64,000 nucleotides of DNA from Asterias rubens (lineage: Eukaryota): positions 4,154,001 through 4,218,000 of the forward strand of contig NC_047082.1 in assembly GCF_902459465.1 (NCBI RefSeq). The letters run 5' to 3'. Below, piece by piece: positions 1-59,350 of the stretch (positions are counted from its first letter, which is position 1; every line of letters starts with the position of its first letter). Under the pieces are notes generated by a model, which had not been told where the DNA came from, did not search any database, and worked only from the letters and a program-made list of their open reading frames with translations. A program made the translations under genes and the position numbers.

Positions 1-1316
1 TTGTCAACTGATACAAAGTTGTTTATGCGAGTTGTGACGCTCAAGAACACATTCCCTGCTAAGCTGTTAAATATGCTTAGCGTAAGCACAATTCCCTGAT
101 TATACGTAAGCGCTGCGATTCTTTCCTTTAAAAGCCATTGGAACAGGACCAAACTAATAGCCTTTTAAACACAAAAAGCTGCTAAACGCCGTGTCATGGC
201 ATGTGTTTAAAATAAATCCGTAATTCTCGACAACGAGAATTGATAATATTGTTTTAATGTTTTCTCGAAAAGTGAAGCATTTCATGGAATAATATTTCAA
301 GAGAAGTCTTTCACCATTACCTTCTGTAAACCCTGAAAGTTATTTGTAAATATGTGATTTTTTTCTTCTTTTTTCTGTGCCGAAAGTGTATAATGGCTTT
401 AGTTGATGCACTCAAATTAAGTCTCACCGAAGCGACATGATTTTGCTGCTAGTTTGAGTTTTCTTGTTCATTTACGTGCAACGAATTTCAACTTCTTTGC
501 ATTCAAATTAAAGATGAGTTATGGCTTCACAAGTTAACTGGGAATTATAGCTCATTTACTAGCACATACATGTAGTCCTCCTTTGTAAGAGGTGTTTCCA
601 TGTACTGTACATTATAATTTTACAATTTGCACCATTTTTTGTTCTTCATTGAAATAACTGTTCCTTTTGCATTGTTTCCCTAAAAGTTAAAGCCTGTATC
701 CAACTAAATATTTTGCTTTAGCCTTGAGATTGTGTTGTTGTCTCTGTTTCTGAATGTCCTGAACATGTCAAATTAGAAGTTTTAACTTTTAGTTTTGAAT
801 GTTTCGAATTTGTTTATAGGCAGCAACGAATGAGTATAAGCACATAACATAGAATTTGAATTTGAATGCAAACAATGCATTTGGAAAATGTTTGCCCATT
901 AATGAAATTGAATGGTTGACCAGCTCTTGCTGCTGGCTTTAACGAAATTGAATGAGTCTTGCAGCCTGATGAAGTTTAATGCTTTTATTTGACCAGTGAA
1001 TGCTTAACTTTTGAAATCGAATAACTAGTTTTGACTTTTGAATGTTGATTCAAAGTGCATTCATGATCAAAACGAAAATGAATGAGTCAATGGATTTTTG
1101 TTGAAATTGACCGAAAAAAACTATATTAGAAAGTTTGGGTCTGCACAATGTTTTTCTCCTTTATATTCCTTATTTGGCCATTAAACAATTACAAACACAA
1201 GCATACAGTATGTAAAATAAATAATATAAATACACAAGTGAATACTAAGCAGGACAAACAGTAAGGGCACAAGAAATACAACCCTAATGTGATGGCCATG
1301 ATCAAGAAAAGTGTAT

Positions 1317-1822
1317 TCATAAATACTCCATACAGTTTTGCTATTCCTATTGGTGAAGAGCGCGTCACGTGGGTGTGTATAAACCCTTGTTAATGACCAG
1401 TAAAAAGTGTTGAAACATGGGCATGACACGCGAGCTCGCACCTGTGCTTATATAGTACAGTTTCTTCATTCCTATTGGTCAAGAGCAACGGCCGGGACAG
1501 TTGTGCCACATCGACGCGCATAGCATTCCCTTATAAGGAGTTGTTTAACCGAGGGCGGCGGAGGGCTTTACCATTTCATAGCTGGAGGGGTGTCGTGTTG
1601 AAAGAAATCATCGAACAATTATAAGTGTTCATGTTTTTTTACCAAAAAGGTATTTATGAATGGGAATCAAAGTGTGTTGAATCGGTTTTCAAATAGTGGT
1701 TTAAACCCGCCGAGGCCTGGTTCTTGGTAATTTTGTCTCGGTAAAATGATTAAGTACCAGGCCTCGTTGGGTTTTTACCACTGGTTGAAAACCTCTTCAC
1801 CACACATTGATTTCCTTAATTA
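1317..1822 (+). mobile_element. Palindrome-ended repeat family D (inverted copy about 40355-40899; terminal fragment about 36413-36495)
   Basis: Direct similarity between copies, an internal inverted repeat ttcataaatac/gtatttatgaa, and a terminal hairpin. Confidence 0.85.
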
Positions 1823-1980
1823 AACACTGGAGCTCGAAAGCCTGTTAATCCAGGCACTTAGGGAGGCACACACACACTATTATATAAAATACTCTCTTAG
1901 GCAATTTTTTATTATTTTTTTTAAGTAAAAATAAATAGAAACTAGACATAATTGCATATGTGCACAAATGCATAGATGTT

Positions 1981-2780
1981 TTTTTAATAACAATTTAAAT
2001 TTTTCAACTGAATTTGTAATTTATTTGTTTATTTTTTCATAGCAGTTATGACCAATCCGGGCTAATTAAAACAATAATTAGGATTATACCATGTTCAGAT
2101 AGCAATTGATGTGTTAAAGGCGCAAAAATGGAAAAAATCTTTAAGAAAGACCATGTGATGACGTCATCATTACGTCATTTTACAGTTAACGAGAACTTGC
2201 CAATATCAAACAATGCACGAATTGTCAACATAATCGCGTCATTACTTTGAGAGTTACACGACTTCAAAAAGTGCACCTTTAATGTCGCGTCACGTGACCC
2301 CCGATGACGTCATTTAAAGTGATTACAACAAATTTCACCACAGACAACTACAAAAAGTAAATTTTGAAGAGTTTTCAACCTGCCGCTAGAGGGCGCTGTT
2401 GCAATTTGTGACGTCATCAATATTTTGTTTGAACTGTCCACCCTTGCTAGACACTTACGTCCTGGAAAGCAACTTCATAACTTTTACCACTTTTGAGTTA
2501 CAGGGCACTTACGTTTTTGGCCCGTTTCGACCGGAAGTAGATGTCATGTTAGGTCAACCACACGAAAAAAAAATGAAGACCTAATTTACCCATACCCAAT
2601 CCCGCAAACAGAAACCTACGGTCCGTTTTGGCTGATTTGATATAGATTTTCAAACATTTAACATAAAACACAATTAAGAAGACGTTATGTGACCGGTGAT
2701 GACGTCATCATGACATCATTGCCTTATGATCATTATTGCACCATAACCTTCGATCCCTGAAAGTTTCATTGCAATTGCTC
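1981..2780 (+). repeat. About 800-bp TGACGTCA-rich repeat, second copy about 4410-5187
   Basis: Direct alignment of the two copies; probably a transposon fragment, family unknown. Confidence 0.9.
2381..2400 (+). promoter_or_regulatory. CTCF-like motif TGCCGCTAGAGGGCGCTGTT (identical at 4799-4818 and 36889-36908)
   Basis: Matches the CTCF core consensus CCGCTAGAGGGCGC; binding is not shown. Confidence 0.55.
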
Positions 2781-3603
2781 TTTAGGACCTATGCAAAATT
2801 TCGGCATTGGGAAATAGGTCCCTCTTCTGGTCACTCAAAGTCCATCGAGGGAATAGACGTACACTAGTTGCCTCATTGCCAGTCAATATGTGTATATTGG
2901 TAACTCCCTGGAGTACTATTCCCCGGGAATTTGCACGGTCGTTTCATGAAAAACGTTTTAGCCCGGGGTTAACTTCCTACCCCTGAGCAGGGTTATTTTT
3001 TTCCAGGAAAACGCTATATTCCGGGCAACTCTCGGGAAGTGAAAAGATAGGCCAAAAGTTCCCGGGAATTTCCCAGGAAATACCTTTAGTGTGAAAAGGG
3101 GCTTGGTAGTGAAACAGTTTATTAGCCCGCCTTCGAACCAAATACACAAGCTGCGGCAGCCTCTGGTAAAAATCGATATTGTATCATTAGTGCTGTCATA
3201 ACAACTCAAACGACTGGAACAGTGAGTTATTTACACTGCCGGGTCTATTTTTAACAAAACATCAACAATTATTTGGGGAAATTTCATCAGTGCTACCGAA
3301 TAGACTTCTGACGATATTAAAAATGTCAGTTCAAGATCGCTTGCTGCTTCCGGTGGTTGAATGGATGACCCAGTAAAAGGGAGTGAGAACATGTTGATGT
3401 TAATAGAGTAGTGGACAAAAGGCATGACATGTTGGAAGGACAGGCGCAGCGCGAGTGGGAATAACGTCAACATTGTGCAAAGTAGTTAATTAAGAGTGAA
3501 CGGACACCAGTCGCAAGAATAATGTAGAAGGAGAGGCTCGCATCTTACCCTATTTTTTTGAAGAAAACAAAAAAATATATATTATTGTTTGTACTTGTTT
3601 TAT

Positions 3604-3642
3604 GCCTCTGAAGAAGGTCCGGATTGGATCGAAAGCTAAGGC
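3604..3642 (+). ncRNA. Minimal type I hammerhead ribozyme motif, copy 1
   Basis: GCCT-CTGAAGA-A-GGTCC(ggatt)GGATC-GAA-AGCT-A-AGGC. This gives stem I GCCT/AGGC, the conserved CUGANGA and GAAA boxes, stem II, a palindromic AGCT in place of stem III, and a CUA cleavage triplet ending at 3638. Confidence 0.8.
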
Positions 3643-3768
3643 CATCTACCCTATTCATTATCCCTTCGGGGTGATCCCCTTGATTTGCTTGTATTTTGTT
3701 TTTAATTGTCATAACCATATCCATTTTATCTTTTCCCACTTATATGTAATTGTTTGTACTTGTTTTGT

Positions 3769-3807
3769 GCCTCTGAAGAAGGTCCGGATTGGATCGAAAG
3801 CTAAGGC
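3769..3807 (+). ncRNA. Minimal type I hammerhead ribozyme motif, copy 2
   Basis: Identical 39-nt motif 165 nt downstream of copy 1; predicted cleavage after 3803. Confidence 0.8.
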
Positions 3808-3909
3808 CATCTACCCTATTCATTATATATGTAATTATATATAAATAAATTATTAAGATGTGTGCCGCTTTACAGATAATCCAGAAATGCTAAATAGCCA
3901 GAAAGTATC

Positions 3910-4278
3910 TTAAAGGCAGTGGCCACTATTGGCATTTACTTAAAATAATGTTTCGCATAAAACCTTCGGAGCTGTTGATAGCATAACACATTGTGAGAAA
4001 CGACTCCCTCTGAAATAACGTTGTTTTCGAGAAAGAAGTAATTTTCCACGAATTTGATTTTGAGACCTCAGAATATTATTTTAGGTCTCAAAATCAAGCA
4101 TCTACCGCACACAACTTCGAGTGACAATGGTGTTTTTTCGTTCATTATTATCTTATTATCTCGCAACTTCGACAACCAATTGAGTTAAAATTGTCACTCT
4201 TAGTTTATGCATATGTTAATATACACCAATTGAGATGACTGGTCTTTGACAATTACCATAAGTGTACAGTGTCTTTAA
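3910..4278. mobile_element. Kolobok-like MITE family A copy
   Basis: TTAA|AGGCAGTGG...CAGTGTCT|TTAA; about 370 bp with the family internal sequence. Confidence 0.85.
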
Positions 4279-5187
4279 GCCGCAATCGTTTGTAATCTTT
4301 TTATCAGCTTTTGGTGGTATTTGATCATGGGTAATATTGTGCTATAGGTCCATTTCCATATTACCTATATTTGATTTCTGTTTTCTGTTGTGTGCATTTG
4401 AAATAACATTTTAAATAACATTTATAATTTTTCAACTGAATTTGTAATTTATTTATATATTTTTTTTTTCACAGCAGTTATGACCAATCCGGGCTAATTA
4501 AAAAAATAATTTGGATTATACCATGTTCAGATAGCAATTGATGTGTTAAGGCGCACAAAGGGAAAAACCATGTGATGACGTCATCATTACGTCATTTTAC
4601 AATTCACAAGAACTTGCCAATATCAAACAATCCACGAAGTTTCAACATAATCGCGTCATTACTTCGAGAGTTATACGACTTCAAAAAAGTGCACCTTTAA
4701 TGTCGCGTCACGTGACCCCCGATGACGTCATTTAAAGTGATTTCAGCAAATTTCACCACAGACATCTACAAAAAGTAAATTTTGAAGAGTTTTCAACCTG
4801 CCGCTAGAGGGCGCTGTTGCAATTTATGACGTCACCAATGTTTTGTTTGAACTGCCCACCCTTGCTAGACACTTACGTCCTGGAAAGCTACTTCATAACT
4901 TTTACCACTTTTGATTTCACAGGGCACTTACGTTTTTGGCCCGTTTCGACCGGAAGTAGATGCCATGTTAGGTCAACCACACGAACAAAATATGAAGACC
5001 TAATTTTCCCCTACCCAATCCTGCAAACAGAAACCTACGGTCCCTTTTGGCTGATTTTCAAACATTTAACATAAACACCTTTAAGATGACGTCATGTGAC
5101 CGGTGATGACGTCATCATGACATCATTGCCTTAGGATCAATATTGCACCATAACCCTCGATCCCTGAAAGTTTCATTGCAATTACTC

Positions 5188-6711
5188 GGTCCATTTAGGG
5201 CCGGTTCGGCAACCATCACACGATTGTCAAACGGATTAATGTCCATTGTGTTGGGCTTATAGCTTTGACTGTTGTATAGTAGACTATGAATATGAATTTC
5301 AAAACTAAAATGTTCAAACGCTTTATTTTATGCGCTGTGTTTTTTCATTTACAAAATACTTGTCAAAAGATACCACACATACTTTTTTTATCGTGAAAAA
5401 CGATGAAGTATAACCTGACATTCTACTTTTACCTCTTTATGTCATGTATTTGCTGGTTGGCTTTGCCTAGCGCTGGAAACGTCAATGTATCTCACATGGG
5501 TACATCATGTACATGTATACATGCATTTGAGCGTTCGAGACGAACTCAGTTTGTGGTTGATTGTGACCAACTAAGAATGTTTCCCAACTAATGTGTTTGT
5601 TTTTAATAAACGTATGACCAGGTTGTTGAATTTGGGTGTGATCTGCAAATAGGACGGTTATAAGTACGTCCTCGTCTGAAGGTTTATTTGTGAATACTTT
5701 TACATTTAAACATACTGTTAGCATTGGAGAAGAAATACCTTTGCATTAATAAAAAGACTGCAATAAAAAATATCGAATGTATGTGTGTGCAATTGTTTGT
5801 TTTATGATTAAGTGGAATAAATGAACTGATCTTATTATCAGAACATTTGTTTATACCCGTCCCGTTTTAACGTTTAAGTTGACATCGAGTAAAGATAAAG
5901 CCCCTCTATGTTTAACGTTCATCAGACAATCTCGTGCTTTAATATAAATAAGTTTCATGGAAAAGTGTAAATGAATTTGGAGTCCGTCTTGTGATTTGGG
6001 GAAAATCTGAAACATAAATATTACAAATCTGTGAAATTATAAATGAATAGTTTAATAACTTTTTATTACAAAGACACATCATGTTAAATCTCTTTTTTGA
6101 TGTGTGTGGCTCTGAAAAGAAAAAAAATAAGATTATATAGTCTAGATAATGTGACCAAAAGTTCGTCAATACAAACGAAATGAGGAATTTTCATTTCCCC
6201 CAATTTTCACAGCGGATCGCGGTAGGAAATCGTTCACCGCGATCCGTTAACCATCTTATTAATTGGAACAGCCTTGTTAAATATTTGTATGATTTCCGTT
6301 CGGTCCTACCTCTCAAAATCAAGAATCCCGAATTTTGTCGACTTGAATTACATAACAAGATGTTCAATGCCGTGTTTTGCCCCCCAAAACCTATTCATTC
6401 ATGATGCTAAGAAAAGCTACTACCTGGGCGTACACGCACCCACCCATTGTTACCAGTACTCCTGGCCGTGGAGGATTAGTCGTGATTAACGAGGGATTAG
6501 CGGTGGAAGTGTCAGTGACAGCCTGGTTTTGGCGAACTCCTTCGTTAGTTGTAAACCACAGTCAAGTACCAACTCTTTTGTGTTTCACCTAAGTAAGTCT
6601 TTCTATAATCTCTGGAAACGATTGCGTGCCGAAACTCAACCGACTGACCCTCTGTAAAGTAATCGTTTGCGGCAATCGTGTGATGGTTGCCGAACCGGCC
6701 CTAAATGGACC
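5188..6711. mobile_element. About 1.5-kb non-autonomous TIR element
   Basis: 40-bp perfect inverted termini cggtccatttagggccggttcggcaaccatcacacgattg ... caatcgtgtgatggttgccgaaccggccctaaatggaccg. No TSD and no transposase ORF. Confidence 0.85.
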
Positions 6712-7549
6712 GCGCGCATAACATACCATGTCTAAGTTACTTAGCACAACTAGAGTTTGCACAATGTAAAATGGAATTTTAACTGGTGACCATTTTTTGG
6801 GTATTCTGGCATGGTTTTCTTTAAGGGCAATTCCATGGTCAGTCGCATTGCACTTTTCTGTGTAATTTCTTGATCTTAGTGCTAGTAGTTCTGTGTGAGA
6901 TATTCTTTCCACTAAGTTTATATACTGACTTGTACTTGATATCAAAGGCTTTGAATTGAGGATATAAGAAATGTTGTGGGGGTGTCCTCTGAACTTAATA
7001 ACGTTTAGTTGTAAAAAGAGGTCAGTCACATTACAAAAAAGGACATGGTAAAAATACACTGTCAAAATTCAAAAGTTTCCTCTAACTTAAAAACTTGCGA
7101 AAGTTTTACTACATGTAACACACAACTCTTATACGTGAGTATCCAACAGGATACTTATAAATGGTCAGCAACTTTAACTTTTAGGTATACATGGCAAAAC
7201 CACGCTCAGTCGCTTTACGGTCAGTCCAGTTTTCCAGTCAGTTTAGCCAAACCTCATGAAGCCCAAGCTTTTTATTCCGCAAAATTGGGTTAATTTCCTC
7301 GTCAACAACTAAAAATAAATTGGTTTCATATGTTTGTTATAAATTCTAAGTGGAAAGAAAGCTGTGACAGTTTTTGTTTGCTTTGATTTGCCCATAAGCT
7401 TTAGCAGCTCATTTAAATTGGGATCTGACCAGTTATGTTATTCACATGACGTGGTACTCCAGCAAGCATCCTGACCCTACCTTTAAGTACTATCCAGCTC
7501 CAAACATTTTATGTAAAGAGACTACTTGTTTCTGATTGACTTGTTCCAG

Positions 7550-7719
7550 GTACCTGGGTGTGTTTTGGTGAAGGTACTATTGACGTGCAGGACGAGAGAT
7601 GGAAGGATGGTCAGCCAAATAGTAACGGCAATGAGGATTGTGCTTTTGGGGAAGATTCAGGCTGGTTCGATTATAAATGTGACCGTTCCGTTAAATTAAT
7701 CTGTCAGCGCCCTGCGTAA
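7550..7719 (+). pseudogene. Orphan C-type lectin terminal exon (unit A); exon 1 absent from the window
   Basis: Intact acceptor and open frame TWVCFGEGTIDVQDERWKDGQPNSNGNEDCAFGEDSGWFDYKCDRSVKLICQRPA*. Homology to the unit B intron starts at about 6714, right after a TIR element. No matching exon 1 is seen upstream. It could be functional if exon 1 lies left of the window. Confidence 0.65.
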
Positions 7720-8046
7720 ACCAACACAATATGAAAGGTTGCTCAATAATCTGAGCTAACTACTTCTTATAAGGATTAAAGGGGTAGGTGATTAACTGCT
7801 CATTCGCTTTGTGATAATCCTTTTTTTTTTACACCAAGCCACTATTTACTTTTAATATTGGGCTCATTAGTAAGAAGACAAATTAATGTTGCATGCATGG
7901 AGTCATCCATCTTGATAGTTTAATCGAACTATATAAAACTAAATTTATCTGTCACAGCCTCTCTCTGTCTCTATCTCAACTGAGAATGGATAAACACTTG
8001 CATGTAAATCGTTTACTATAACAATTATTTCTGGTTATAATATCAC

Positions 8047-8428
8047 TTAAAGACCTGGACACTCTTGGTAATTGTCAAAGACTAGTCTTCTCACTTGGTG
8101 TATCCCAACATAAGCATAAAATAACAAACCTGTGAAAACTTGAGCTAAATTGGTCATCGAAGTTGCGAGAAAATTAAGAAAGAAAAAACACCCTTGTTGG
8201 ACAAATTTGTGTGCTTTCAGATATATAGGAATAAAATACTTCTGGCTAGAAGTCCTTTATTATTTTAGTGAATAATTACCTCTTTCTCAAAATTTATGCT
8301 GCTTCGAAGGGAGCCGTTTCTCACAATGTTTTATACATTCAACACTGCTATCCAATGCTCGTTACAAAGTCAATTTTTAAGTAAACATTTTGTTTTGAGT
8401 AATTACCAAACGTGTACCTGTCCTTTAG
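8047..8428. mobile_element. Kolobok-like MITE family A copy (empty site present in unit B)
   Basis: TTAA...TTAG flanks; the paralogous site near 13920 has a single TTAA and no insert. Confidence 0.9.
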
Positions 8429-10609
8429 TTAATATTATTGTTCACACAGTGCCCGCAACAACTAACACGCAGAAATAAAGTTCATTCTCATTATTTTGGT
8501 AATAATATAGTTTCATGATTGTGTGAAACAACTAATATAACGTCAATGTTTCGAAAATGTTTCACCAAAAATGCATTTGTGTTAGTACATGCTCAGCACT
8601 GACACCATAGTGACGTCACCGTTAATGTCAGCCCTCTTATAATCAAGTTTTCAGTATAAAACATGACCCTATTTTTATGTTCCTGTAACAGAGAAGCAAT
8701 ATATATTTGTTAAAGATATTAAAGTCGTTTTTGGAACCTTACAATTCTTTCTATGTAAAGAATTTGCAAATTGTTCTACAATCTTGTAAGGAAACTCTTT
8801 AGTGAGGCTGTCATCTTTAAAAAACTGATTATTGCAAACAAGTTTTCATAGCTTTAAAAAATGGTAAATTAGCTTCAGGATAAATAGTATTCATTTTATT
8901 GTTTGAGAGTTATTCGCAAAGTGCAATTTTAAATATTGTTTTTGGCATTGTTATTGTATCAGTATATGTAGTAGTAACCGGTTTACTGTTTAATTTAATT
9001 TAATTATTAACATTCACTAAGTTGGAAAACTGAAGCATTATTAACTTTAAAAACTTATCAGGCAAAACACTACTTCACGCTAACTATAGGGTAAGTCTTA
9101 GAGGTAAGTCTTAGAAAAATCCCCTTTTTGGTCCCAAAACAGAACTAACATAATATATTCATGTAGAATGATCAGGCAGATACCCAACATAAGAAAACAA
9201 ATCACTAAAATCAAAGATTATTTCAGTGTTGTAGAGAATAAAACGTTGGGTCAGGAACTCCTCAAATTTGTGTCGAACGATTTCGCGTTGTAACTAAACT
9301 GCTTCTTTGATTCATTATGAACTAAAAACACTTAAATTGTAAGTTTAGATACTCTAGATGTTTTTCAAATAATTATGTGAACTTCGTTGAATTATATGTG
9401 AAATTTGAATCTTAACACATGAATTTTGGTATCCGTCAAGACAATAGTATCCGTCAGATTAACACATAAGCAAACAATAATTGATGTGAACGATATAAAT
9501 AGTATTGATGATGTTTATTTTTTGAAATACTTGCCCAGCACTGAAAGCTCGAAATAAATTACTGCACAAAAAGCCATGTTTTACTCAGCCTCTCAAAATT
9601 ACAATGCGTTAAACTCTTATACCAACTCGACCTCTAGAAATTAACCTAACCAAACCCCACCCTTCAATTAACCCCTAACCAACCCCGACCTAGACTTGAC
9701 CTCTGGCTTTATCGTCTGCACATGAATCTAGGTGAAAGGTGAAGATGGACGAGGATTAACCATGAGACCTTTCTTTTGTTGATAAACAAACCGCCTTGGT
9801 TGGCATGGTCGGCCGAATGTTAGTACAACACTCAATCGTAAAAACTGATGTTTCAACAAATTTCAACATTTACTGCAAATTTTCAATTAAATAAAATACC
9901 TCTCGATATAAGTTGCTTTATTTTAAACAAAATCAACAAATTTTGTTACATTGTTACCAAAATAGCGATCTATTCTTGATTTGCACTTATGGCTTTCTAT
10001 AGTTTTGGCAAAAACTCGGGCTGTGACGTTGCAAAAGAAAGGTCTATACTCTGTATGGCGTTATTCACGAGAGGCTCGAAGTGTGACGTCAGATGTTCAG
10101 GCTAGCCCCGACCCTTCAAAATATTAACCCGAATGGAAATGAACCAAAGGAGGTGGAGTCAAAAGAGGGCGCTACCAGTTCATTTATGCACTTATTTAGG
10201 CACGTAAACACCATGCACAGGGTCCAATTTCATAGATCCACTTAAAAAAGATCTACTCTTTGATTTTGCAGCATTGGCCGCCATCTTTGATGAAACGTGC
10301 ACGCGTGCAATGCTATCATTGGCTGAGAGTTGTGCGCAGCGCGTACACGCGCCATGCATTTTTCAAAGATGGCGGGGTCAATGACGTCATGTGAAATCTT
10401 TCTATATCAACAGTTGAGGATACCGGTATGTGTACTTCAAGGTTTCCTTAAGTAAGATGACGCCATGCACTTACGTCAATCCAGCCGCCAAAGATCTTTG
10501 AAGTAAACTTTAATGAAATTATGGAATTTCCAAACAGGGCTGGCAAAATAATTTTAATTAATGAGCAATCTCCTTATGATCTCAGAGTAGATTATTCAGT
10601 GCTTATCGT

Positions 10610-10973
10610 TTAAAGGCAGTGGACACTATTGGTTATTACAGAAAATAATTATTAGCATAAAAATTACTTGGCAACAACCAATCGAGAGCTGTTGATAGCT
10701 CAAAACATTGTGAGAAACGGCTCCCTCTGAAGTGACGTAGCTATTGAGAATGATGTAATTTCTCATTCATTTTACATTAGGCCTGAACCTTTTATTGGCG
10801 TTTTGACAGTACACAAATTTGTGCAACAGGGTGTTTTTCTTTCAATTTTCTCTTGCAACTTCAATATGAACAAATGAGTCAATAACGCTCACAAATTTGA
10901 TGCATAGTTGTGATACACCAAGTGAAAATACTGTACTTGTATTTTACATTTAAAAGCTGTCCGGTGCCTTTAA
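10610..10973. mobile_element. Kolobok-like MITE family A copy
   Basis: TTAA flanks, family TIR and body. Confidence 0.85.
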
Positions 10974-11344
10974 GCGATTTACTACGTTTACTAAGCCTTG
11001 CTGTGTACTACTTTTTTTTATTTTTTTTTTATTTTTTTATTTAACGACACGTTTCCAAACTTTCCTTGGCAGAGCTTCAAGGTTGGTAATTTTTTCTTGG
11101 TCGGTTTTTCTACGTGACTTCTACCGGAAGGCAATCGATCATAAAATTGTAGAATAGTTGTTTACGTTACTTGTTGCTTTTGTTGCCAATACCAATATTC
11201 AGTGAGTGCGAGAAGGGTTTCTTTCAAAGCTAACCGACCGTGCTCCTAGACTTCAAGGTTTCTTCGATTAAAATATTGACGCTATGCAGTGACGTCAATA
11301 CAGACGCCATCTTATATCGGGCAGCAATTTCAATTTGTCAAGAG

Positions 11345-13614
11345 ATGGTCAGCAAAATGTTGGCGAGCAAACTGCTGGGTGTTGTTGGTTTATTTATGAT
11401 GGCAGACTACGCTGCTGTTAATGGGCGGTGTTGGAAGAAGGCCCGCGCCGGAGGGACACCTACTGGAGGGACAACTACCGGAGGGACACCTACCGGAGGG
11501 ACACCTACCGGAGGGACACCTACCGGAGGGACACCTACCGGAGGGACGCCTACCGGAGGGACACCTACCGGAGGGACACCTACCGGAGGGACACCTACCG
11601 GAGGGACACCTACCGGAGGGACACCTACCGGAGGGACGCCTACCGGAGGGACGCCTACCGGAGGGACGCCTACCGGAGGGACGCCTACCGGAGGGACACC
11701 TACCGGAGGGACACCTACCGGAGGGACACCTACCGGAGGGACACCTACCGGAGGGACACCTACCGGAGGGACACCTACCGGAGGGACACCTACCGGAGGG
11801 ACACCTACCGGAGGGACACCTACCGGAGGGACACCTACCGGAGGGACACCTACCGGAGGGACACCTACCGGAGGGACACCTACCGGAGGGACACCTACCG
11901 GAGGGACACCTACCGGAGGGACACCTACCGGAGGGACACCTACCGGAGGGACACCTACCGGAGGGACACCTACCGGAGGGACACCTACCGGAGAGACCTC
12001 TACCGGAGGGACACCGCCATGCCCTCCTTCTTGGAGCCAGTTGCAAGGCAAATGCTACAAGATGCATGATGCCTACGTTACATGGGAAGAGGGCAAGCAG
12101 ATTTGTGTTGAGTTGGGTGGGGTGATGGTTGTCCCTCAATCCGAAGAAGAATTACAACACCTCGACAACATCTTCAGTGGTCAATTGTTCTGGATTGGGT
12201 GCACCGACATTGTCGTTGAAGGTTTGTGCACAACTAGAAATTGCTTTTATTTTTCCCTTATCAATAGTTTTATTTTATGCCTTTTGAAGTTGGAAGTCAA
12301 CAACATTCTGAATTTTATTTTGACTTCACCCCTTTTTCGGCTCTCAAATCTGCGTATATACTGAATATCTACAACATTCATGAGGCATTCGCTTTATTTC
12401 CTATTTATACGTCGAAACGTTAACAAAATTACGTGAGTATTTGGCTGTGTTTCTAAAACAAATCATTTATTAAGTTGATATTTTATCAGCCTGGTGAACT
12501 TCTTTTACGATATACCTATTTATAGTCGGGTGCGCCCCATTGCAACATCTTGCTTCTCTTCATGAATAAAATTGTAAGTTACTTTATTCTAAAAGCCATG
12601 AAACATCGTATAACTTACCATGTCCAAGTTTACTTAGCACAACTAGAGTTTACACATGTAAAATGGTATTATAACTGGTGACCATTTTTTGGTATTCTGG
12701 CATGGTTTTCTTCAAGGGCAATTCCATGGTCAGTCGCATTGCACTTTCTGTGTAATTTCTTGATCTTAGTGCTAGTAGTTCTGTGTGAGATATTCTTTCC
12801 ACTAAGTTTATATACTGACTTGTACTTGACACCCAAGGCTTTGAATTAATGATATAAGAAATGTTGTGGGTTTGTCCTCGGGACTTTAATAATAACGTTT
12901 AGTTGTAAAAAGAGGTCAGTCACATTACAAAAAAGGACATGGTAAAAATACACTGTCAAATTTAAAAGTTTCCTCTAACTTAAAAACTTGCAAAAGTTTT
13001 ACTATACATGTAACACACAACTCTTATACGTGAGTATCCAACAGGATACTTATAAATGGGCAGCAACTTTAACTTTTAGGTATACATGGCAAAACCACGC
13101 TTAGTCGCTTTACGGTCAGTACAGTTTTCCAGTCAATTTAGCCAAGCCTCATGAAGCCCAAGCTTTTTATTCCGCAAAATTGGGTTAATTTCCTCGTCAA
13201 CAACTAAAAATAAATTGGTTTCATATGTTTGCTATAAATTCTAAGTGGAAAGAAAGCTGTGACAATTTTTGTTTGCTTTGATTTGCCCATAATCTTTAGC
13301 AGCTCATTTAAATTGGGATCTGACCAGTTATGTTATTCACATGACGTGGTACTCCAGCAAGCATCCTGACCCTACCTTTAAGTACTATCCAGCTCCAAAC
13401 ATTTTATGTAAAGAGACTACTTGTTTCTGATTGACTTGTTCCAGGTACCTGGGTGTGTTTTGGTGAAGATACTATTGACGAACAGGACGAGAGATGGGCT
13501 GCCGGTGAGCCAGATAGTAACGGCAACGAGGATTGCGCTTTGAGGGCTACTTCAGGCTGGTACGATAATGGATGTGACGTTTACACTAATTTAATCTGTC
13601 AGCGCCCTGCGTAA
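11345..13614 (+). CDS. Secreted C-type lectin with N-terminal (GGTPT)x38 Thr/Gly/Pro-rich stalk (unit B), 348 aa, 2 exons
   Basis: Exon 1 is 11345-12221: MVSKMLASKLLGVVGLFMMADYAAVNG (signal-like), 38 x 15-bp repeats at 11450-12019, then CPPSWSQLQGKCY...FWIGCTDIVVEG. GT donor at 12222; ttccag acceptor. Exon 2 is 13445-13614: TWVC...WAAGEPDSNGNEDCA...GWYDNGCD...LICQRPA*. Phases match (1/1). CTL hallmarks are present: WIG, the EPD sugar motif, WYD in place of WND, and the conserved Cys residues. Confidence 0.92.
11450..12019 (+). repeat. Coding minisatellite, 15-bp unit (GGAGGGACACCTACC) x38
   Basis: Seen directly. Internal variants are mostly ACA/ACG, which are synonymous in the GGTPT frame. 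Confidence 0.98.
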
Positions 13615-15173
13615 ATCAACACAATATGAAAGGTTGCTCAATAATCTGAGCTAACTACTTCTTATAAGGATTAAAGGGGTAGGTGATTAACTGCTCATTC
13701 GCTTTGTGATAATCTTTTTGTTTAACACCAAGCCACTATTTACTTTTAATATTGGGCTCATTGGTAAAAAGACAAATTAATGTTGCACGCATGGAGTCAT
13801 CCATCTTGATATTTTAATCGAACTAATAAATTCACAGCCTGTCTCTGTCTCCATCTCAACTGAAAATGGAGCAATACTGGCATGGAAATCGTTTACTATA
13901 TTTCTTGTTATAATATCACTTAATTAATTTTATTGTTCATAGTGCCCGTAAAAACTAACCCTTTAGAAATAAAGTTCATTTTTGTCATAGTATTATAGTT
14001 TCATGATTGTGTGAAATAAACATAACGTCAATGTTTCGAAAATGTTTCACCAAGAATGCAGTTATGCTAGTACATGTTCAGCATTACACCAATAGTGACG
14101 TTACCGTTAACGTCAGTGGAACATGACCCTGTTTTCCTTTTCCCTGAAACAGAGTAAATAGCAACATATTTCTTTTAAAAGATATTAAAGTCTTTTTTGG
14201 AACCTTACAACTCTTTCTATGTAAAGAATTTGCAAATTGTTTTACAAATCTTGTAAGGAATGTCTTTTCTGAGGCTGTCATCTTTAAAAAACTGATTATT
14301 GCAAACAAGTTTTCTTAGCTTTAAAAAATGGTAAATTAGCTTCAGGATAAATAGTATTCATTTTATTGTTTGAGAGTTATTCGCAAAGTGCAATTTTAAA
14401 TATTGTTTTTGGCATTGTTATTGTATCAGTATATGTAGTAGTAACCGGTTTACTGTTTAATTTAATTATTAACATTCACTAAGTTGGAAAACTGAAGCAT
14501 TATTAACTTCAAAAACTTATCAGGCAAAACACTACTTCACGCTAACTATAGGGTAAGTCTTAGAAAAATCCCCCTTTTGGTCCCAAAACAGAAGAACTAA
14601 TAACATATGATATTCATGTAGAATGATCAGGCAGATACCCAACATAAGAAGAAAACAAATCACTAAAATCAAAGATTATTTCAGTGTTGTAGAGAATAAA
14701 ACGTTGGGTCAGGAACTCCTCAAATTTGTGTCGAACGATTTCGCATTGTAACTAAATTGCTTCTTTGATTCATTATGAACTAAAATGAAATTGTAAGTTT
14801 AGATATTCTAGATGTTTTTCAAATAATTATGTGAACTTCGTTGAATAATATGTGAAACTTGAATCTTAACACATGAATTTTTGTTTTACCTATATGGTTA
14901 CACGATTTAAACAAAATTATGATGGCCCTGGAAAAGCCGATTGGTTTAGTCTCAACATTTCAACAACTGTACTCTCGTCGTTGTCACTGTCTCCTAAAAC
15001 GACTGCTTTAGAGCACACTACATTGAATAAACCAACCGGCTCTCACAGAGACATCACCTCAATTAGTTTTCAAGAAGAGACAACTTTATATGTGTCTCCG
15101 TCAAACTAACATTACTTTATTAAAAAGTGTATACCTTTAATTGATTTAATAATATGTGTCGATCTAACATTAA

Positions 15174-15660
15174 CCCTATCAGGAAAATTCTTTTGGCGAC
15201 TCAAGTGGGCGGGGGCGTGGCTTTAATATGATGCTCCTTTTTTTACATTATCACCTCAAACATTTACCTTGAACAAGTCGGTGATAAAAACTGTGGTATA
15301 TAGTTTGAACCTCTAAATACGGGCTGAACAAAACACAAGACAATAGCCGATTTTGATACGCCATTTTTAAATCGCAAACTGCATTTAACACTTTTACGTG
15401 AAACGGCAAAACCATTTTTACAGGAAAAATGTTTAATATAGTAAAAAAAAACGGAAAAACAACAACTACATTTTTTTCAATCGTTTGATGACCCAAGATC
15501 GAACAAACGGTTCGCATGGTAACATCTGACACCGAAATCAATACTTTTGTATACAAGTTATGATCCAAGATTAATATTTGGGAAACGAAATAGAAATTGT
15601 GCGATCGAATGAAGCGTTAAAACTTATGGGCAAAAGTATGGAACCCTGGTCCTGATAGGG
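15174..15660. mobile_element. piggyBac-like MITE, 487 bp
   Basis: TTAA|CCCTATCAGGA ... TCCTGATAGGG|TTAA; CCC/GGG termini with a TTAA TSD. Confidence 0.82.
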
Positions 15661-15766: not shown

Positions 15767-16152
15767 TTAAAGACAGTGGACACTATTGGTAACTGTCAAA
15801 GACCAGTCTTCTCACTTGGTGTATCTCCACATATGCACAAAATAACAAACCTGAGAAAATTTGAGCTCAATTGGTCGTCGAAGTTGCGAGATAATAATGA
15901 ATGAAAAAAAAACACCATTGTCACACGAAGTTGTGTGCTTTCAGATGCTTGATTTCGAGACCTCAAATTCTAAATCTGGGGTCTCGAAATCAAATTCGTG
16001 GAAAATTACTTCTTTCTCGAAAACTACTCCACTTCAGAGGGAGCCGTGTCTCACAATGTTTTATACTTTCAACATCTCCCCATTACTCGTTACCAAGTTG
16101 GGTTTTATGCTAATAATTGTTTTGAGTAATTACCAGTGTCCACTGCCTTTAA
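15767..16152. mobile_element. Kolobok-like MITE family A copy
   Basis: TTAA flanks, TIR AG(G/A)CAGTGGACAC. Confidence 0.88.
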
Positions 16153-16744: not shown

Positions 16745-17097
16745 ATGGTCTGCACTATGTTGGCGAGCAAATTGCTGGGTGTTTTTGGTATAGTTATGAT
16801 GGCAAACTACACTGCCGTTACCGGAGGGACACCTACCGGAGGGACCCCTACCGGAGGGACGCCTACCGGAGGGACCCCTACCGGAGGGACGCCTACCGGA
16901 GGGACACCTACCGGAGGGACACCTACCGGAGGGACCCCTACCGGAGGGACGCCTACCGGAGGGACCCTTACCGGAGGGACGCCTACCGGAGGGACACCTA
17001 CCGGAGGGACACCTACCGGAGGGACCCTACCGGAGGGACGCCTACCGGAGGGACCCTTACCGGAGGGACACCTACCGGAGGCCTAATATTGTGCTAA
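16745..17097 (+). CDS. Lectin-less paralog (unit C): signal peptide + 17 GGTPT-type repeats + LILC*, with one 1-nt frameshift near 17026
   Basis: 5' end aligns with unit B (cagcaatttcaatttgtcaagagATGGTC). Repeat 14 lacks one C of a CCCC run, which is either a real lesion or a homopolymer sequencing error. The tail resembles the unit B 3'UTR at about 13749-13805. Confidence 0.6.
16823..17080 (+). repeat. 15-bp minisatellite x17 with 90-bp higher-order structure
   Basis: Thr codon order is ACA,[ACC,ACG,ACC,ACG,ACA,ACA]x2,ACC,ACG,ACC,ACA. Confidence 0.95.
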
Positions 17098-18624
17098 TCA
17101 GAAAGAAACTTGTTTGCATGGAATCATCCATCACTAACCAAGTTTTAAGTTCAGTTTCCCTGAAAGTGGATAATTTTGCAAGTTCAATTATTAATATGTT
17201 TACATCTTTCTAAATAGTTCACTGGGCAGTGAGCTAACAAATTGTGATAAAGTTGGATTTGGTTATAATACTAGTTTCAAACGTGAGTGTTCAAAAATTC
17301 ATATTGCCATTGTCAGAAAATGACGTCATTGATAAAAATAAATTTCAACAAGAATGCAGTCGTAAGCTTTTTACGATGAAGTTTTCACGTTTCAAATATG
17401 ACTCCTTGGCCCAAGACGACAGTGATTGGATAGCGGATAGTCTAATACGCTCAGTTTTATCACTAAAGCGCGCACTCTGACGTCACGATTTAACCAACTT
17501 GACTGGCTCGCTCGGCATCATGCCGTAAGAGGGCGCGCTATAGCGAGTAACAACAAGTCTGAAACCAAAAATGTTAATTTTAAAACTTTATGAAAGTCGC
17601 TTATTGTGTAAAATCTTGCAAGGGAAACTCTTCTTTACTTTCTGGCATCTTTAAAAATTCACGACTCTATTAAAATTTATAAAAGTTTCTCTCTGAAGTA
17701 GCAACATGCATTCCAGTGGATTGAACTTTCTGAATGCCCCAATAGGCTACGAAATGTGCGAATTTTCTTGGAGGGAAGTTTTTTCTTACGGTTTCGCAGT
17801 ACAGCTATTGCTTTTCTGCAATAAACCTGAGTTAATTCAAATTTAAGTTGAGAAAATCTATATTTATTATATTGTATGTGATGGGGTTGATAATGTAAAA
17901 GTTGAACACATGTTTAGTTCAACCCGTGAAACACGATTTGAACAAAACGATTGGCCGCGAAAAGCCGGTTGGTTTAGTTTCAGCATTTCAACTCACCGTC
18001 TCCTATAACGACTACTTTAGAGCACACTACATTGAATAAACCAACCGGCTCTCACAGAGCCACCACCTCAGAGTTTTCAAGAAGATAAAATTACATGGCG
18101 TATCCGTCAGACTATTAAATGGTGTAATAATATGAGTATATAATTTACGATATGTTGTTCATGTTTTAAAATAATTGCTCAGCACGGCAAGCTCATTGTT
18201 AAATACGTTCTGCACAAAATGACATGTTTTTAATAAACTTCTTTAAGGACAAGTCCGAAATTTTCCCTAAGCAACCCCGACCCTTCCAAATGAATCTAAC
18301 TTGCCCTAATTAACTAAAATCCCTTAAGCAACGAAACCCATATACCAATCCCGACCTTCATACACAGTTTACCCTAACCAACCAAATAGATGACACAAAA
18401 TTGATTTGGAGAGTAGACTCATTCCAGCCCTCTCAATTCAACCAAGTGAAGATTCATTCTAATCATCACAAGAAACACACAAATTCAATCAAGCTGTGAA
18501 AAGAACAAGCGTGTTCAATCAACCAAAACCATTGAGCAAGTTACAGACCCGATGGCCCCTGTTGCAAAGTCGATACACCAGAGTGCTTGCTTCTAAGTAA
18601 CGACGCCCTCTAACTCCTAATCAA

Positions 18625-21026: not shown

Positions 21027-24000
21027 ATGGGCCCTCTTGTGGGGGAATGTGGCCATTGGGGTCTGGCTGTCGTAACCGCCTCGTTCACTGTCCATCTTCT
21101 GGTTAAGGTGGTAACACGCTGTGCTGGAGTATTGTTTCTAAGCTTTCAAAATGAGTTCCAGAGTTCAACTGCACAGACAGGCGCCATCTTTAGTATCATG
21201 TCATCCTCATCATACATAGGAAGTAAGAATTACTTATCTTTAGCCACTAAAAACAACAAAGTGACAACGGAAATATGACCCGAAGTGCTAACAGTTTTCC
21301 TTGTTAAAAGAAACATCTCGAACTCGGCAGATGATCCAACAGAACCAGAAGAAAATATCATCTCAGTATTTACAGAATTACAATTAATAACAGGCTACTG
21401 TTTTTATTTTACTTCGACTACAAATCATTTCAATATCTAGGTCCGATTTCGAGCCGAATTGACCCCAAGATTCAGATTGAATACCTCTTTCAAAGACTCG
21501 AAAACATTACTGTAAAAATCCATTACAATTCCATCCAACCAATCAGCAGGGCTCTTATTTATATAATTCACTTACTTCTGGTACACAAGATCATTGATGT
21601 ATCGTCAGGACCTCCTCTCAATCGGTGGGCAAAAGTCACTGATATTTATTTATGGTTTATTTTTTATTTATTCAGATACGATAGGTGGTGTGTTAGGGAA
21701 TCATCTGAACTGTCGCTCTACTGCTATACTTGGTAGTATATTTTACACTGCTGGGACAATAAGCTGCAGCTTTACAACAAATATTTATCAGATGTACTGT
21801 ACAAGTGCTCTGGCAGGTAAGATACAGGCATAGGCATCTAATACATGTACTTCATATCAATCGCGGGGAATCTATAGACACACCAGGGGTGGATTTCACA
21901 AAGAGTTAGGACTAGTCTTATCTCGAGTTAGGACCAGTTACTCGTCCTAACTTTAGGACTATCCATGCAATGTGTATGTCTCCTAGGACTAGTCCTAACT
22001 TTGTGAAATCGACCCCAGGCCTGAAAGCCACTTCAAGGCTACAACCCATTTTTTCTTTGGCCCGTTGCCACCTACTCCAGGGCTGAAACAGGGTTACCCC
22101 CTTTACAGTCCATACGGATGTAGGCTTGGGTACAATTATCCACCCAAGCCTGGCTGGTAGAGCCGAAAGCAAGCACTAACTCCCCAACTTCACGAAGCAA
22201 TCATGATCAAGTGTCGCGCTAGAATGAGAATGAGAGGTCACGTTCCTGACCAACTGGCCGGGTATATATTATCATCTAAAAGGCTGGTGTAAAAGTTAAA
22301 CAGCAAACGTGAGTGTATACATGTTGTTTTAATACGTATTTCAGGTATTCGGGTGCATTCAGGTCTTCCCAGTGCAGTTTCTCCCCTGTCTTTCGTTACA
22401 AGATAGACCATATTTAATAAATTAGAATAATCACAAATTTTCTATTCTGGTTGCTGTGTTCGAAGATGGGAGTCACCTTCTGTTATTTTCAGTCGATACT
22501 TTACTAACTGGTATACGCTGAATACATGGAAGTCACAAATGATGTAAGTTTCCCTTCTTTCCTTACTGTAGGACTAGGTGGTGGAATTACTGTAATACCG
22601 GCAGTTGTAATGGTCGCTAAGTACTTCAAGAGATATTACCCCTTAGCGTGTGGAATTTCAACATCTGGACTTGACATTGGAATGTTGGTGTTTGCTCCAT
22701 TGATGCAGCTATTACTGGATACTTATGGATGGAGGGGAGCAATGCTCGTAACTGGAGCATTTGTGGGTAATGTTTTTGCAGCTGGGGCACTTTTTCGCCC
22801 AGTACGGTCGTCTTCACAGACAGGAGACAAGAAGAGCACAGAAGAACATGTTGAACAAGGGGAAGACAAAGAAATGCTGAAGGATAATAATGAGAATCAC
22901 AGATCAACGCAGAGTGAAGATCATGGAATCAACGAAGTGAAGACCCAGAACCAATTACAAAGTACCGATGCAACGAACATCACTTTGAAGTCGCAACGCC
23001 AGAGGAATCTATTCTCCGCAGCCGCCAATTCACTTCGGCTACATCTTCTCAGTGAATCTTATCGCCTCTCTTTGATTATCTTCGCTCAAGTCGTAGCTTA
23101 CCTCGTTGCTTATACTTGTTTCATTATGTTCTTAGTCCCATTTGCCACATCATCTGGTATTTCAGAGCAGGATGCATCTTTTCTTATAAGTGTCTGTGGA
23201 ATTGGCGGGATTGTTGGACGTCTTATTTGTGGAGTCCTAACTAAGAAAGCCTCATCTTACGTCATCTACCAGGTGTCCATGTTTGTGAGTGGATGTGCCG
23301 TCTTGCTGGTGCAACTTGGTACGACCTGGATTTACATTTCTGCATCCATGGTTGGAATAACATACGGAATACAGTACACAATCTGGCGGGTGATGATGCT
23401 GGAGTTAGTTGGAGTGGATAACATGGGGTCTGCCATTGGAATCTACTCAAGCATTGGGATTCCCTTTACAGTCACAGTGCCCATCTTATCAGGTACCGTT
23501 CCCTTGTATCAATTGATAATAAATTTCAAACATGAATGCAAGGTGATTCTCAATATTTGGACTATCCAAGTTCCTTACAAGCTAACACAATAGCTAATAC
23601 AAATTTAACATAAACTTTCTTTTAAAGACAAGCAAATCATCTGCCATGACTGATCGGATGTGTGCTTCGGCCACGGCTTGAATTTAAGTTCCAAAATAGG
23701 CCGTGTGAGCTATAAAATGTCTTCCATCGACGTGGCTTCGAATTAGAAGGACAAATCCCAAGAGCCAATCCAAGGTTCAAAGTCGACGGGGAAAAGCTTA
23801 AAGAAACAAATGACACTCCAAACTGTTTCACAAAGTTGTTATTCGTTCTTTTAGAGTTTTAGCAGAAGACCTGGCCGGAGAGTTTAGCTCAAATTGTTCG
23901 GTTTATAGCAAAAGGATTTCTGGCATGTATATATTCATTGATATATATTATTTATTTTTACACAGGAGCCCTCTACGATACAACCGAGAGCTACTCTATT

Positions 24001-45438: not shown

Positions 45439-46048
45439 AATTATTGCGTGACATTCCCATCTCCATGCATAATCCAACTCATACGGAAAGACGCCTGGGT
45501 TACTACATCATGTAGTCGGAGCTTTTAGAACCCGACTATGCTCCCCGACGTCCGGGTAACTTTTGCAGTAGAGGCCTTTGTAACGCCAGGCGCGATCTTT
45601 ATTACGCCCGATTTTCGGACTTCAACTCTAGGTTTATAGGCTGTAAAAACTTGTTGCTATCATCAGGGATCAGCTTTTACCATGGCAACCGCTTGTTTTG
45701 AAACGAGTTTATTATTTGTTTGTGATTTGCTGTATTTTCCACAAAATGTCCACTTGTTTTTTAAATTTTCCAAATAGGCCTATGCCCAGTATAGACATAT
45801 AGGTAGCGCCACGTGGGCGTTATGTACTGTTGGCGGCCATGTTGGATTGTGCGTTCTCAGCACGTTCGCTTATTGTTTTTAAACTAAATAGGCCTACAAT
45901 TTTAGACTGCTTTTTTTCTATATCTTTCGGCCAACAATATCATGCTGTATGGAAGTTCAGCCCCACGGGGTGCATTGGTCCTAATTGGCGTTATATATAA
46001 CATCCGATACATTTTAAGTTGAAACAAAATACGATTTTGTTCATTTAT

Positions 46049-50213: not shown

Positions 50214-50474
50214 TATACAAAGGAGTTGGTGGTAAAAAATACCAAGTAAGTGTCGTTCAGTCAGCAAGCTGTATAAATGAAAGATTTATTGTGTTATTTT
50301 TTTTCTCATGACTGCATTCCGTGACTCCAGCCAACAAATATCTCGAGAGCAGTATTAATCGCATGAGATCCGTTACCGCAACCAACATTTAGCGACTTGT
50401 TCCTAAGTCTATAACAAACAGCCCAGTAACTGTTACTTACAGGGCCTTGGCTTGGCTGACGGAAAACAAGCTGT

Positions 50475-50851
50475 TTAAAAGACACTGGACACCATTGGTT
50501 ATTATCAAAGACTAGCTTTCACAGTAGGTGTATCTCAACATATGCATAAAATAATTAACCTGTGAAAATTTGAGCTCAATCGGTTGTCGAAGTTGCGAGG
50601 TTAGTATGAAAGAAAATAATACCCTTGTCACGAATCTGTGTGCTTTCAGATGCTTGATTTCGAGACCTCAAAATTTAATTCTGAGGTCTCGAAATCAAAT
50701 TCGTGGCAAATTTCCTCTTTCTCGAAAACACGTCACTTCAGAGGAGCCGTTTCTCACAATGTTTTACATCAACCTCTCCCAATTACTCATAACCAAGTAA
50801 GGTTTTATGCTAATAATTGTTTTGAGTAATTACCAATAGTGTCCACTGCCT
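50475..50851. mobile_element. Kolobok-like MITE family A copy
   Basis: Family TIRs and body, upstream of SLC52. Confidence 0.85.
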
Positions 50852-58999: not shown

Positions 59000-59350
59000 T
59001 TAAAGCAGTGGACACTATTGGTAATTACTCAAAATAATTATTAGCACAAAACCTTACTTGGTAACGAGTAATGGGGAGAGGTTGATAGTATAAAACATTG
59101 TGAGAAACAGCTCCCTCTGAAGTAACGTGGTTTTCGAGAAAGAAGTAATTTTCCACGAATTTGATTTCAAGACCTTCAGATTTAGAATTTGAGGTCCCGA
59201 AATCAAGCATCTGAAAGTGCACCACGTCGTGTGACAAGGGTGTATTTTCTTTCATTATTATCTCGCAACTTCGACGACCAATTGAGCTCAAATTTTCACA
59301 GGTTTGTTATTTTATGCATAATATATTGAGAGAGACAAGTGAGAAGACAC
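59000..59350. mobile_element. MITE family A copy truncated by a SINE; partial copies also at 32211-about 32335 and about 33310-33423
   Basis: Left TIR intact; the right end is replaced by SINE sequence. Confidence 0.82.

Follow-up and report, generated by a model that had tools for sequence, protein, structure and literature searches.

A lectin-domain exon with a divergent binding-loop core between closely similar flanks in a tandem C-type lectin array of the starfish Asterias rubens

The window considered here is a 64,000-nt stretch of Asterias rubens sequence LR699112.1, of which positions 2062–23614 are identical to the locus that we refer to as L007. It contains a tandem array of units related to genes for secreted C-type lectins, two of which, named A and B, carry homologous copies of a last exon encoding the C-terminal half of the lectin domain; these units and the other features of the window are listed in Table 1. 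Gene B consists of two exons and encodes a complete secreted C-type lectin of 348 aa. The NCBI model of this gene (P0178, 12062–13614) has 109 aa and starts at an internal Met codon at 12062; it lacks the signal peptide and the GGTPT stalk of some 38 copies encoded in the same open exon, and the annotation appears truncated. In unit A, homology with B begins abruptly in mid-intron (A, 6715; B, 12607), and tblastn searches of positions 1–7549 with the signal peptide of B, the N-terminal lectin half of B and two relatives revealed no exon-1 partner for exon A. In the NCBI annotation, the 10 kb that precede the B model contain no gene call on exon A. The exon is most readily viewed as the orphan of a broken neighbour gene, that is, as a relic. 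An earlier reading of this DNA from its letters alone (the original prediction) had taken exon A to be functional now or until recently, and this view stands only in a weakened form: neither an exon 1 in the 7.5 kb upstream nor a gene model speaks for it, although the positional counterpart of unit A in the sister species, Asterias amurensis, is a complete gene.

Table 1. Features of the lectin array, tracts of A/B divergence and dispersed elements in the window (positions numbered from the first nucleotide of the window)
Feature	Position	Strand	Description
Unit A partial intron	6715–7549	+	Copy of gene B intron 12607–13444 (self-BLAST, pairwise alignment)
Exon A	7550–7719	+	Orphan last exon, C-terminal half of C-type lectin domain (QPN, WFD); stop codon TAA, acceptor intact
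Exon A hypervariable core	7574–7695	+	Holds all 28 A/B differences
Unit A near 3' flank	7720–7931	+	B-like, 2–4% divergence, younger than species split
Unit A high-divergence noncoding tract	7932–8802	+	13.8% from B; includes A-only SINE-like insertion 8050–8425
Unit A distal low-divergence tract	8803–9427	+	2% from B
Gene B exon 1	11345–12221	+	Signal peptide, ~38 GGTPT repeats, N-terminal half of lectin domain; GT donor, phase 1
Gene B intron	12222–13444	+	First ~190 nt orthologous to U2 intron; 12607–13444 common to unit A
Gene B exon 2	13445–13614	+	C-terminal half of lectin domain (EPD, WYD) and stop codon; within NCBI model P0178
Gene B 3' flank	13615–14881	+	Homologous to 7720–9427
Unit C	16745–17130	+	Signal peptide and GGTPT repeat fragment, frameshifted, without lectin domain; position conserved in A. 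amurensis
A/B tract 1	6715–7573		Divergence 3%
A/B tract 2 (exon core)	7574–7695		Divergence 23%
A/B tract 3	7696–7931		Divergence 3%
A/B tract 4	7932–8802		Divergence 13.8% (436 aligned noncoding nt)
A/B tract 5	8803–9427		Divergence 2%
SINE-like copies	8050–8425, 15767–16152, 28943–29331, 40905–41292, 46048–46434, 47384–47757, 50478–50851, 58999–59348

The two exons align without gaps, differ at 28 of 170 nt (16%) and are open in the same reading frame, and their translations, which begin TWVCFGEGTIDVQDERWKDGQPN in A and TWVCFGEDTIDEQDERWAAGEPD in B, are each ended by a stop codon. All 28 differences are confined to offsets 24–145 of the exon, a core of 122 nt, and affect 19 codons, 17 of them with a change of amino acid and two purely synonymously; the outer 24 nt at each end of the exon, every Cys and every Trp are identical. 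Immediately 5' of the exon, 289 nt of intron (7261–7549) contain three mismatches (7337, 7370 and 7398), and the first 99 aligned nt of the 3' flank contain one, at 7721. When a longer part of the intron is compared by pairwise alignment (6795–7549), 20 of 752 nt differ, so that between these tandem paralogs the exon is more diverged than the homologous intron (Fisher p=2e-10); the comparison of the exon with all 1934 aligned nt of flank gives p=2e-7. The contrast in divergence between exon and flank is thus real and beyond chance. All of the counts in the original prediction, including those of about one difference in the 3' untranslated region (UTR) and three in the adjoining intron, were reproduced, and the invariance that it had noted at Cys, Trp and exon ends was confirmed. 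Its estimate of about 1% for the divergence of the flanks holds directly beside the exon but not across the whole homologous unit (6715–9427 in A, 12607–14881 in B), where mean flank divergence is 5%. Indeed, a two-state segmentation of A/B divergence divides the unit into five tracts in the order low-high-low-high-low (Table 1), and a noncoding stretch of 170 alignment columns starting near 8456 contains 28 A/B differences, as many as the exon itself, although the divergence of the exon core remains somewhat above that of the noncoding high-divergence tract (p=0.017). Low divergence of the flanks is therefore a local feature. Part of the unit A intron (6825–7370, with a copy at 12717–13265) is a high-copy repeat, present at 100–400 times unique depth in contigs of three organisms.

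The N-terminal lectin half of gene B matches the Pfam family Lectin_C (PF00059) with 29.9 bits (cut-off 22.6), and for the complete relatives P0002 and P0156 the scores are 48.7 and 59.9 bits, both above the cut-off. Taken alone, the exon-2 halves reach 20.5 (B) and 17.8 (A) bits over profile positions 68–107 and fall short of it, which is no surprise for 40% of a domain. The Cys framework and the WIGL-type core motif of the fold are present, the motif as FWIGC in exon 1, and the Cys residues of EDC, GCD/KCD and LICQ are invariant in A, B and all relatives. The exon is, as had been proposed, a lectin module, namely the C-terminal 40% of a C-type lectin domain. The best matches among solved structures are the domains of DC-SIGN and DC-SIGNR (CD209 and CLEC4M; E=1e-18, full-domain alignment), and in the alignment with DC-SIGNR the EPN tripeptide, the conserved Glu in NEDC and the WND motif all align with the Asterias domain. 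In mannose-binding protein A (MBP-A) and DC-SIGN, the tripeptide, the conserved Glu and the Asn-Asp of WND are the ligands of Ca2+ site 2 and of the sugar. The A/B differences fall on five sites of the DC-SIGNR alignment: before the tripeptide, in the tripeptide, in the loop after the conserved Glu, at the Asn of WND with the next two residues, and in the following strand. The claim that the changes cluster in the ligand-binding part is therefore upheld, as they align with EPN, the post-Glu loop and WND of DC-SIGNR and the same codons vary in some 40 members of the family. However, the canonical set of five Ca2+-site-2 ligands is not complete, since the tripeptides are hybrids (QPN in A, EPD in B) and the Asn of WND is absent from both (WFD and WYD), with the Glu and Asp kept. 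Without this Asn, canonical sugar binding by A and B is not assured, and binding of a sugar must be regarded as putative. The likeness to DC-SIGN and DC-SIGNR is reflected in the names CLEC4M-like and CD209-like that NCBI gives to Asterias family members; unlike these receptors, which are type II membrane proteins, the Asterias lectins are secreted and carried on a GGTPT repeat stalk.

The variation between A and B has its counterpart throughout the family. A search with the 55-aa exon alone found one relative, and the family became visible by profile search, which returned about 30 A. amurensis proteins named CLEC4M-like or CD209-like, most of them encoded on a single 15-Mb chromosome, at least eight members in A. 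rubens on LR699112.1, and many exon-sized fragments from marine metagenomes. At the EPN position the family has QPN, EPD, EPN, QPD, EPS and others, and at the WND position WND, WFD, WYD, WKD, WHD, WDD and WLD. Among eight paralog exons, the same codons are hypervariable and framework codons are identical even at third positions. In public contigs the first ~50 nt of the exon are common to some 25–30 copies; contigs depart from the reference at 7602 or 7621 and rejoin it at 7692 or 7732, and one departing end reads A-T-N-E-P-N. As paralog contigs share the exon ends and depart within the core, a hypervariable core between conserved ends is a trait of the family. Two paralogs, P0003 and P0156, are identical save for one patch, LKDKRWM as opposed to the A-like VQDERWK, which, judged from the sequences, looks like a patch exchange between paralogs. 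The orthologs L001 and L003, a pair that spans A. amurensis and A. rubens, differ by 2.5% in the N-terminal half (nonsynonymous divergence, dN, 0.018) and by 15.7% in exon 2 (dN 0.18, synonymous divergence, dS, 0.16); their exon 2 also differs by a deletion of two codons in the binding loop. The pattern is repeated in this pair and recurs, in weaker form than in A/B, in two neighbouring A. rubens copies, L004a and L004b (exon 2 11%, intron 5.5%; p=0.03). The cluster in which these lie, L004, is about 210 kb away and has four copies of exon 1 and three of exon 2; at positions 15126–15490 of that locus lies an exon 1 without a partner, the converse of exon A. The tripeptide associated with sugar preference has at least six forms in the family, and differs between copies 6 kb apart and between reference B and a nearly identical environmental contig. 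A literature search on this starfish lectin family found nothing specific, and the specificities of the approximately 40 Asterias lectins are worth testing in relation to starfish immunity, work on wasting disease included.

The history of unit A was investigated by comparison with the A. amurensis locus (L005), which is colinear with the window and contains two complete lectin genes, U1 (P0184) and U2 (P0182), a C-like unit and the same major facilitator superfamily (MFS) transporter gene. Gene B matches U2 in exon 1 and in the initial ~190 nt of the intron. Unit A lies at the position of U1, and 8426–8600 differs by 3.3% from the 3' flank of U1 as against 13% from B; the exon and near flanks of A, on the other hand, are of the B/U2 type, exon A being 85% identical to U2, 83% to B and 73% to U1. 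The intron shared by A and B (~770 nt) is absent from the entire A. amurensis locus apart from its last 43–65 nt, and U1 and U2 are 15–45% diverged in every segment around exon 2, with the exception of a distal segment corresponding to 9101–9427 (1.4%). For these two reasons we place the homogenisation of A and B in A. rubens specifically, after the species split. In agreement with this, divergence in the near 3' flank is 0.019–0.041 between A and B and 0.052–0.056 between A and U2, and in the near UTR 0.019 between A and B and 0.056 between either of them and U2. In the core, A and B differ by 0.23 and are 0.19 and 0.17 from U2, so that the three are roughly equidistant. When changes were apportioned to branches by outgroup site counts, the core gave 13 changes private to A, 11 to B and six to U2 (plus four triple sites), whereas the near flanks and exon ends gave three, three and 27; the branch proportions differ between core and near flanks with Fisher p=9e-7. 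Exon A carries 13 private changes in its core where about two are expected from its flanks, and in six of the 13 the state is that of U1, as against ~1.3 expected by chance (p ~0.001). In a maximum-likelihood (ML) tree of the exon, A falls outside a group of B, the B-like contig L006 and U2 (71% bootstrap). It is the contrast in branch proportions, the U1 states and the copied intron, and not topology alone, that assign different histories to core and flanks, and the alternative offered in the original prediction, gene conversion or recombination that has left exon and flanks with different genealogies, fits the data best. A different form of mixed ancestry, with trans-species QPN and EP lineages represented by the paralogs L001 and L002, was considered and dropped, as 13 quartet sites group A with B and three group A with L001 and B with L002.

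From the mosaic of divergence, the orphan state of A, the copying of flanks in A. rubens only and variation in B that is restricted to the core (see below), we favour a reading, to which we give a probability of about 0.6, of young copied flanks around an old, mosaic and fast-turnover core, produced by recombination or gene conversion in the tandem array together with rapid turnover of the binding loops. The array of secreted, mucin-stalked C-type lectin genes would have held two old paralogs, of which the upstream one, at the U1 position, would have lost its 5' part in A. rubens. A partial copy of B, made after the species split and comprising the exon with ~835 nt of the preceding intron and ~210 nt of the 3' flank, would then have overlaid the 3' part of this neighbour through non-allelic recombination or gene conversion, and such an overlay accounts for the 1–3% difference between A and B in intron, exon ends and near UTR. 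The 122-nt ligand-loop core would have escaped homogenisation or been re-patched from other members, leaving in A a probable patchwork of older lineages, in which roughly half of the private sites have the states of U1 and of the family consensus; the B core is probably still turning over, mostly by amino-acid change. The exact order and direction of these exchanges are those that we infer from the comparison, and selection on ligand specificity presumably keeps or drives the differences in the core. A simpler history, in which A and B are old duplicates and A decays neutrally as a pseudogene while B is conserved, agrees with the orphan and unannotated state of A. Yet the B core has changed about as much as that of A (11 private sites as opposed to 13), A retains family-consensus states and an open frame, and the near flanks postdate the separation of the species. 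Relative-rate tests give an answer that depends on the outgroup, but with QP-class outgroups it is B that is faster, by 14 changes to four. We therefore regard neutral decay of A as highly improbable.

The original prediction had put forward strong diversifying selection as its first explanation, and this part of it was not borne out. For A and B, dN is 0.20 and dS 0.175 by the Nei–Gojobori method (NG86) or 0.127 by ML, with dN/dS 1.12. Silent sites in the exon are 5–10 times as diverged as the adjoining intron (0.01–0.03), and the statement that only two codons differ synonymously understates silent change, because four multi-hit codons (GTG to GAA, AAG to GCT, GAT to GCC and GAA to GCT) have a third base changed that the amino-acid change did not require. 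Over the whole domain, B and its ortholog U2 give dN/dS 0.78 (NG86) or 1.2 (ML; bootstrap interval 0.35–1.9), and the cores of three independent close pairs give a pooled value of 1.25 (confidence interval 0.66–2.68), as compared with 0.46 in exon frameworks and 0.83 in N-terminal halves. In none of these tests (A/B, B/U2 and the pooled core of three pairs) was the ratio (omega) significantly above 1. If A and B were recent duplicates, 2–3% old, whose loops had acquired adaptive new point mutations without any exchange, the position of the changes at ligand-binding sites and the excess of exon over intron divergence in a second pair (L004a/b) would be accounted for, as would the failure to find a donor for the private patches of B among six paralogs. 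The raised silent divergence would not, however, and neither would the 13 core changes in orphan A where some two are expected, which selection cannot explain unless A is expressed, nor the six of 13 private A states shared with U1; omega of 1.1–1.3 is not significant. Taken together, the silent sites, the orphan state of A and the sister-species locus point to mixed genealogies at A/B, and we consider diversifying selection acting by itself rather unlikely as the full explanation. For genome scans the case carries a caution, in that an exon diverged beyond its intron is not by itself proof of positive selection; a recent review describes how gene conversion and multi-nucleotide mutation confound or mimic tests for it (PMC12737323).

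The observation that speaks most directly for selection comes from a marine metagenome contig of 508 nt (L006) that aligns with B without gaps and differs from it at seven of 122 core sites but at only two of 386 sites in intron, exon ends and UTR (p=9e-4). One of these core differences is synonymous and six are nonsynonymous, with the replacements D23N, N25K, R33G, T35D (through two adjacent bases) and N41Y. The contig has the base of A at five of the seven sites, and as U2 has it too at four of these five, retained ancestry is explanation enough for those four. As the contig keeps A/U2 bases and is mostly in the ancestral (U2) state, it is reference B that carries a recent run of replacements, EPN to EPD included. 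This contrast is the best evidence for selection, or for a local mutational process, on the working gene. Clustered multi-nucleotide mutation, for example by error-prone repair, would raise both dN and dS without selection or conversion, and adjacent differences are indeed in excess: 19 of the 28 A/B differences adjoin another (p=5e-4 over the exon as a whole and 9e-3 in the core by itself), whereas the noncoding high-divergence tract has no such excess (p=0.11), and a tandem GA to AC change separates L006 from B at the within-species level. Against a purely mutational origin, to which we assign little probability, the variable codons are the same in all paralogs and match the binding loops, the conserved codons between them are identical even at third positions, and the private states of A match U1 far above chance. 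Variation was also seen in exon A: a contig from run X1, a closely related organism, matches exon A and has TAC AAT at codons 46–47 (7688–7691), a third variant at hypervariable codons, and in run X2, the likely source sample, the sole exon-A contig has T for G at 7654 (codon 35), possibly a heterozygous site in the core of the orphan exon.

A mosaic of this kind could in principle be created in assembly, if A and B were haplotypes or a chimera misplaced in tandem, and the short contigs do break at the first A/B difference, with none in public data joining intron, exon and UTR of A. Nevertheless, the window has no runs of N, and A and B are separated by unique sequence that contains the promoter and exon 1 of B. 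One contig specific to A (7573–7725) has every A state in phase. Depth is similar for contigs specific to A and to B, and in those shared by both it is about the sum of the two; the A. amurensis locus likewise has two units in the same order. Misassembly is thus extremely unlikely. A more speculative extension of recombination in the array, which we think quite unlikely, is that fragment units (orphan exon 2 in A, the exon-1-only unit C and the orphan exon 1 of the L004 cluster) form a reservoir of cassettes shuffled into working lectin genes by germline conversion; use of exon A as a conversion donor is possible. If true, this would be a pseudo-V-like diversification, comparable to that of chicken immunoglobulin genes, of a secreted recognition protein in an echinoderm.

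Several points weigh against copied flanks around an older, exchanged core. Imposing the flank topology (A sister to B) on the exon costs 2.8 log-likelihood units and is not rejected by the approximately unbiased (AU) test (p=0.27). None of the six sequenced paralog exons is a donor with the private patches of B, and the changes in B may be new mutations, not imports. The part ascribed to selection must be argued past a dN/dS that is never significantly above 1, L006 may derive from a sister taxon and not be an allele, and the disuse of exon A is argued from structure and annotation, no RNA run having been found that contains either exon. Patchy conversion that spares single nucleotides within the core is, moreover, mechanistically awkward. 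Across paralogs, the C-terminal half of the domain weakly rejects the tree of the N-terminal half (AU p=0.034), whereas the N-terminal half does not reject that of the C-terminal half; such incongruence between the halves is suggestive only.

The A/B case is an instance of a known pattern, concerted evolution in a tandem array of recognition genes with a binding core that is hypervariable. Closest among described cases are the L/M opsins of primates, tandem genes in which gene conversion has homogenised the introns while central exons have remained diverged (gibbon study, PMC3213168); there, the trees of the exons go back further than those of the introns, the tracts of conversion are intronic, and selection acts against homogenisation of the codons that define function (PMC3213168). 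Opsins and A/B have in common an exon significantly more diverged than the intron, and the A/B exon sequences may likewise point to a split older than that of the flanks, which look species-specific. The starfish case differs from that of the opsins in several respects. One partner, A, is an orphan and no working gene, so that no more than one side can be protected by selection. Divergence is concentrated in 122 nt within a single exon. Part of the homogenised flank does not occur in the sister species, which makes it a copy-paste and more than a homology-driven tract, and the exon tree gives weaker support. The closest case of accelerated evolution in this fold is that of the snake-venom C-type lectin-like genes, likewise tandem and secreted, which together with phospholipase A2 (PLA2) genes show accelerated coding evolution with KA/KS near or above 1 (PMC6062510 and papers cited there). 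In the starfish genes, by contrast, omega of 1.1–1.3 is not significant and silent sites are raised too, and nothing indicates use in venom. The tandem KRTAP1 family combines a homogenised coding region with radiating flanks (bioRxiv 10.1101/282418; review PMC3924837). Short-tract conversion in tandem repeats and abrupt shifts in genealogy at or near coding boundaries are features that A/B resemble, but the polarity is reversed, as here the flanks are alike and the coding core has diverged. The Asterias array provides a clean and checkable echinoderm example in which recombination keeps flanks and framework alike and ligand-contacting codons stay different or turn over fast.

Some further features of the window deserve mention. 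The noncoding segment 9101–9427 is within 1.4–6% among A, B, U1 and U2, with adjoining stretches differing by at least 15%, and represents a conserved element or else a hot spot for conversion in the two species alike. A short interspersed element (SINE)-like sequence of ~380 nt is present in many copies of 85–90% identity (Table 1), one of which is inserted in unit A and none in unit B. A minus-strand open reading frame (ORF) at 6589–7065, which overlaps the intron repeat, has no Pfam match. Downstream of the lectin units lie an exon of the MFS transporter gene (22526–23593, plus strand), which is syntenic with A. amurensis, and a riboflavin transporter of the SLC52 family encoded by a single ORF (48921–50267, minus strand; Pfam E=5e-125).

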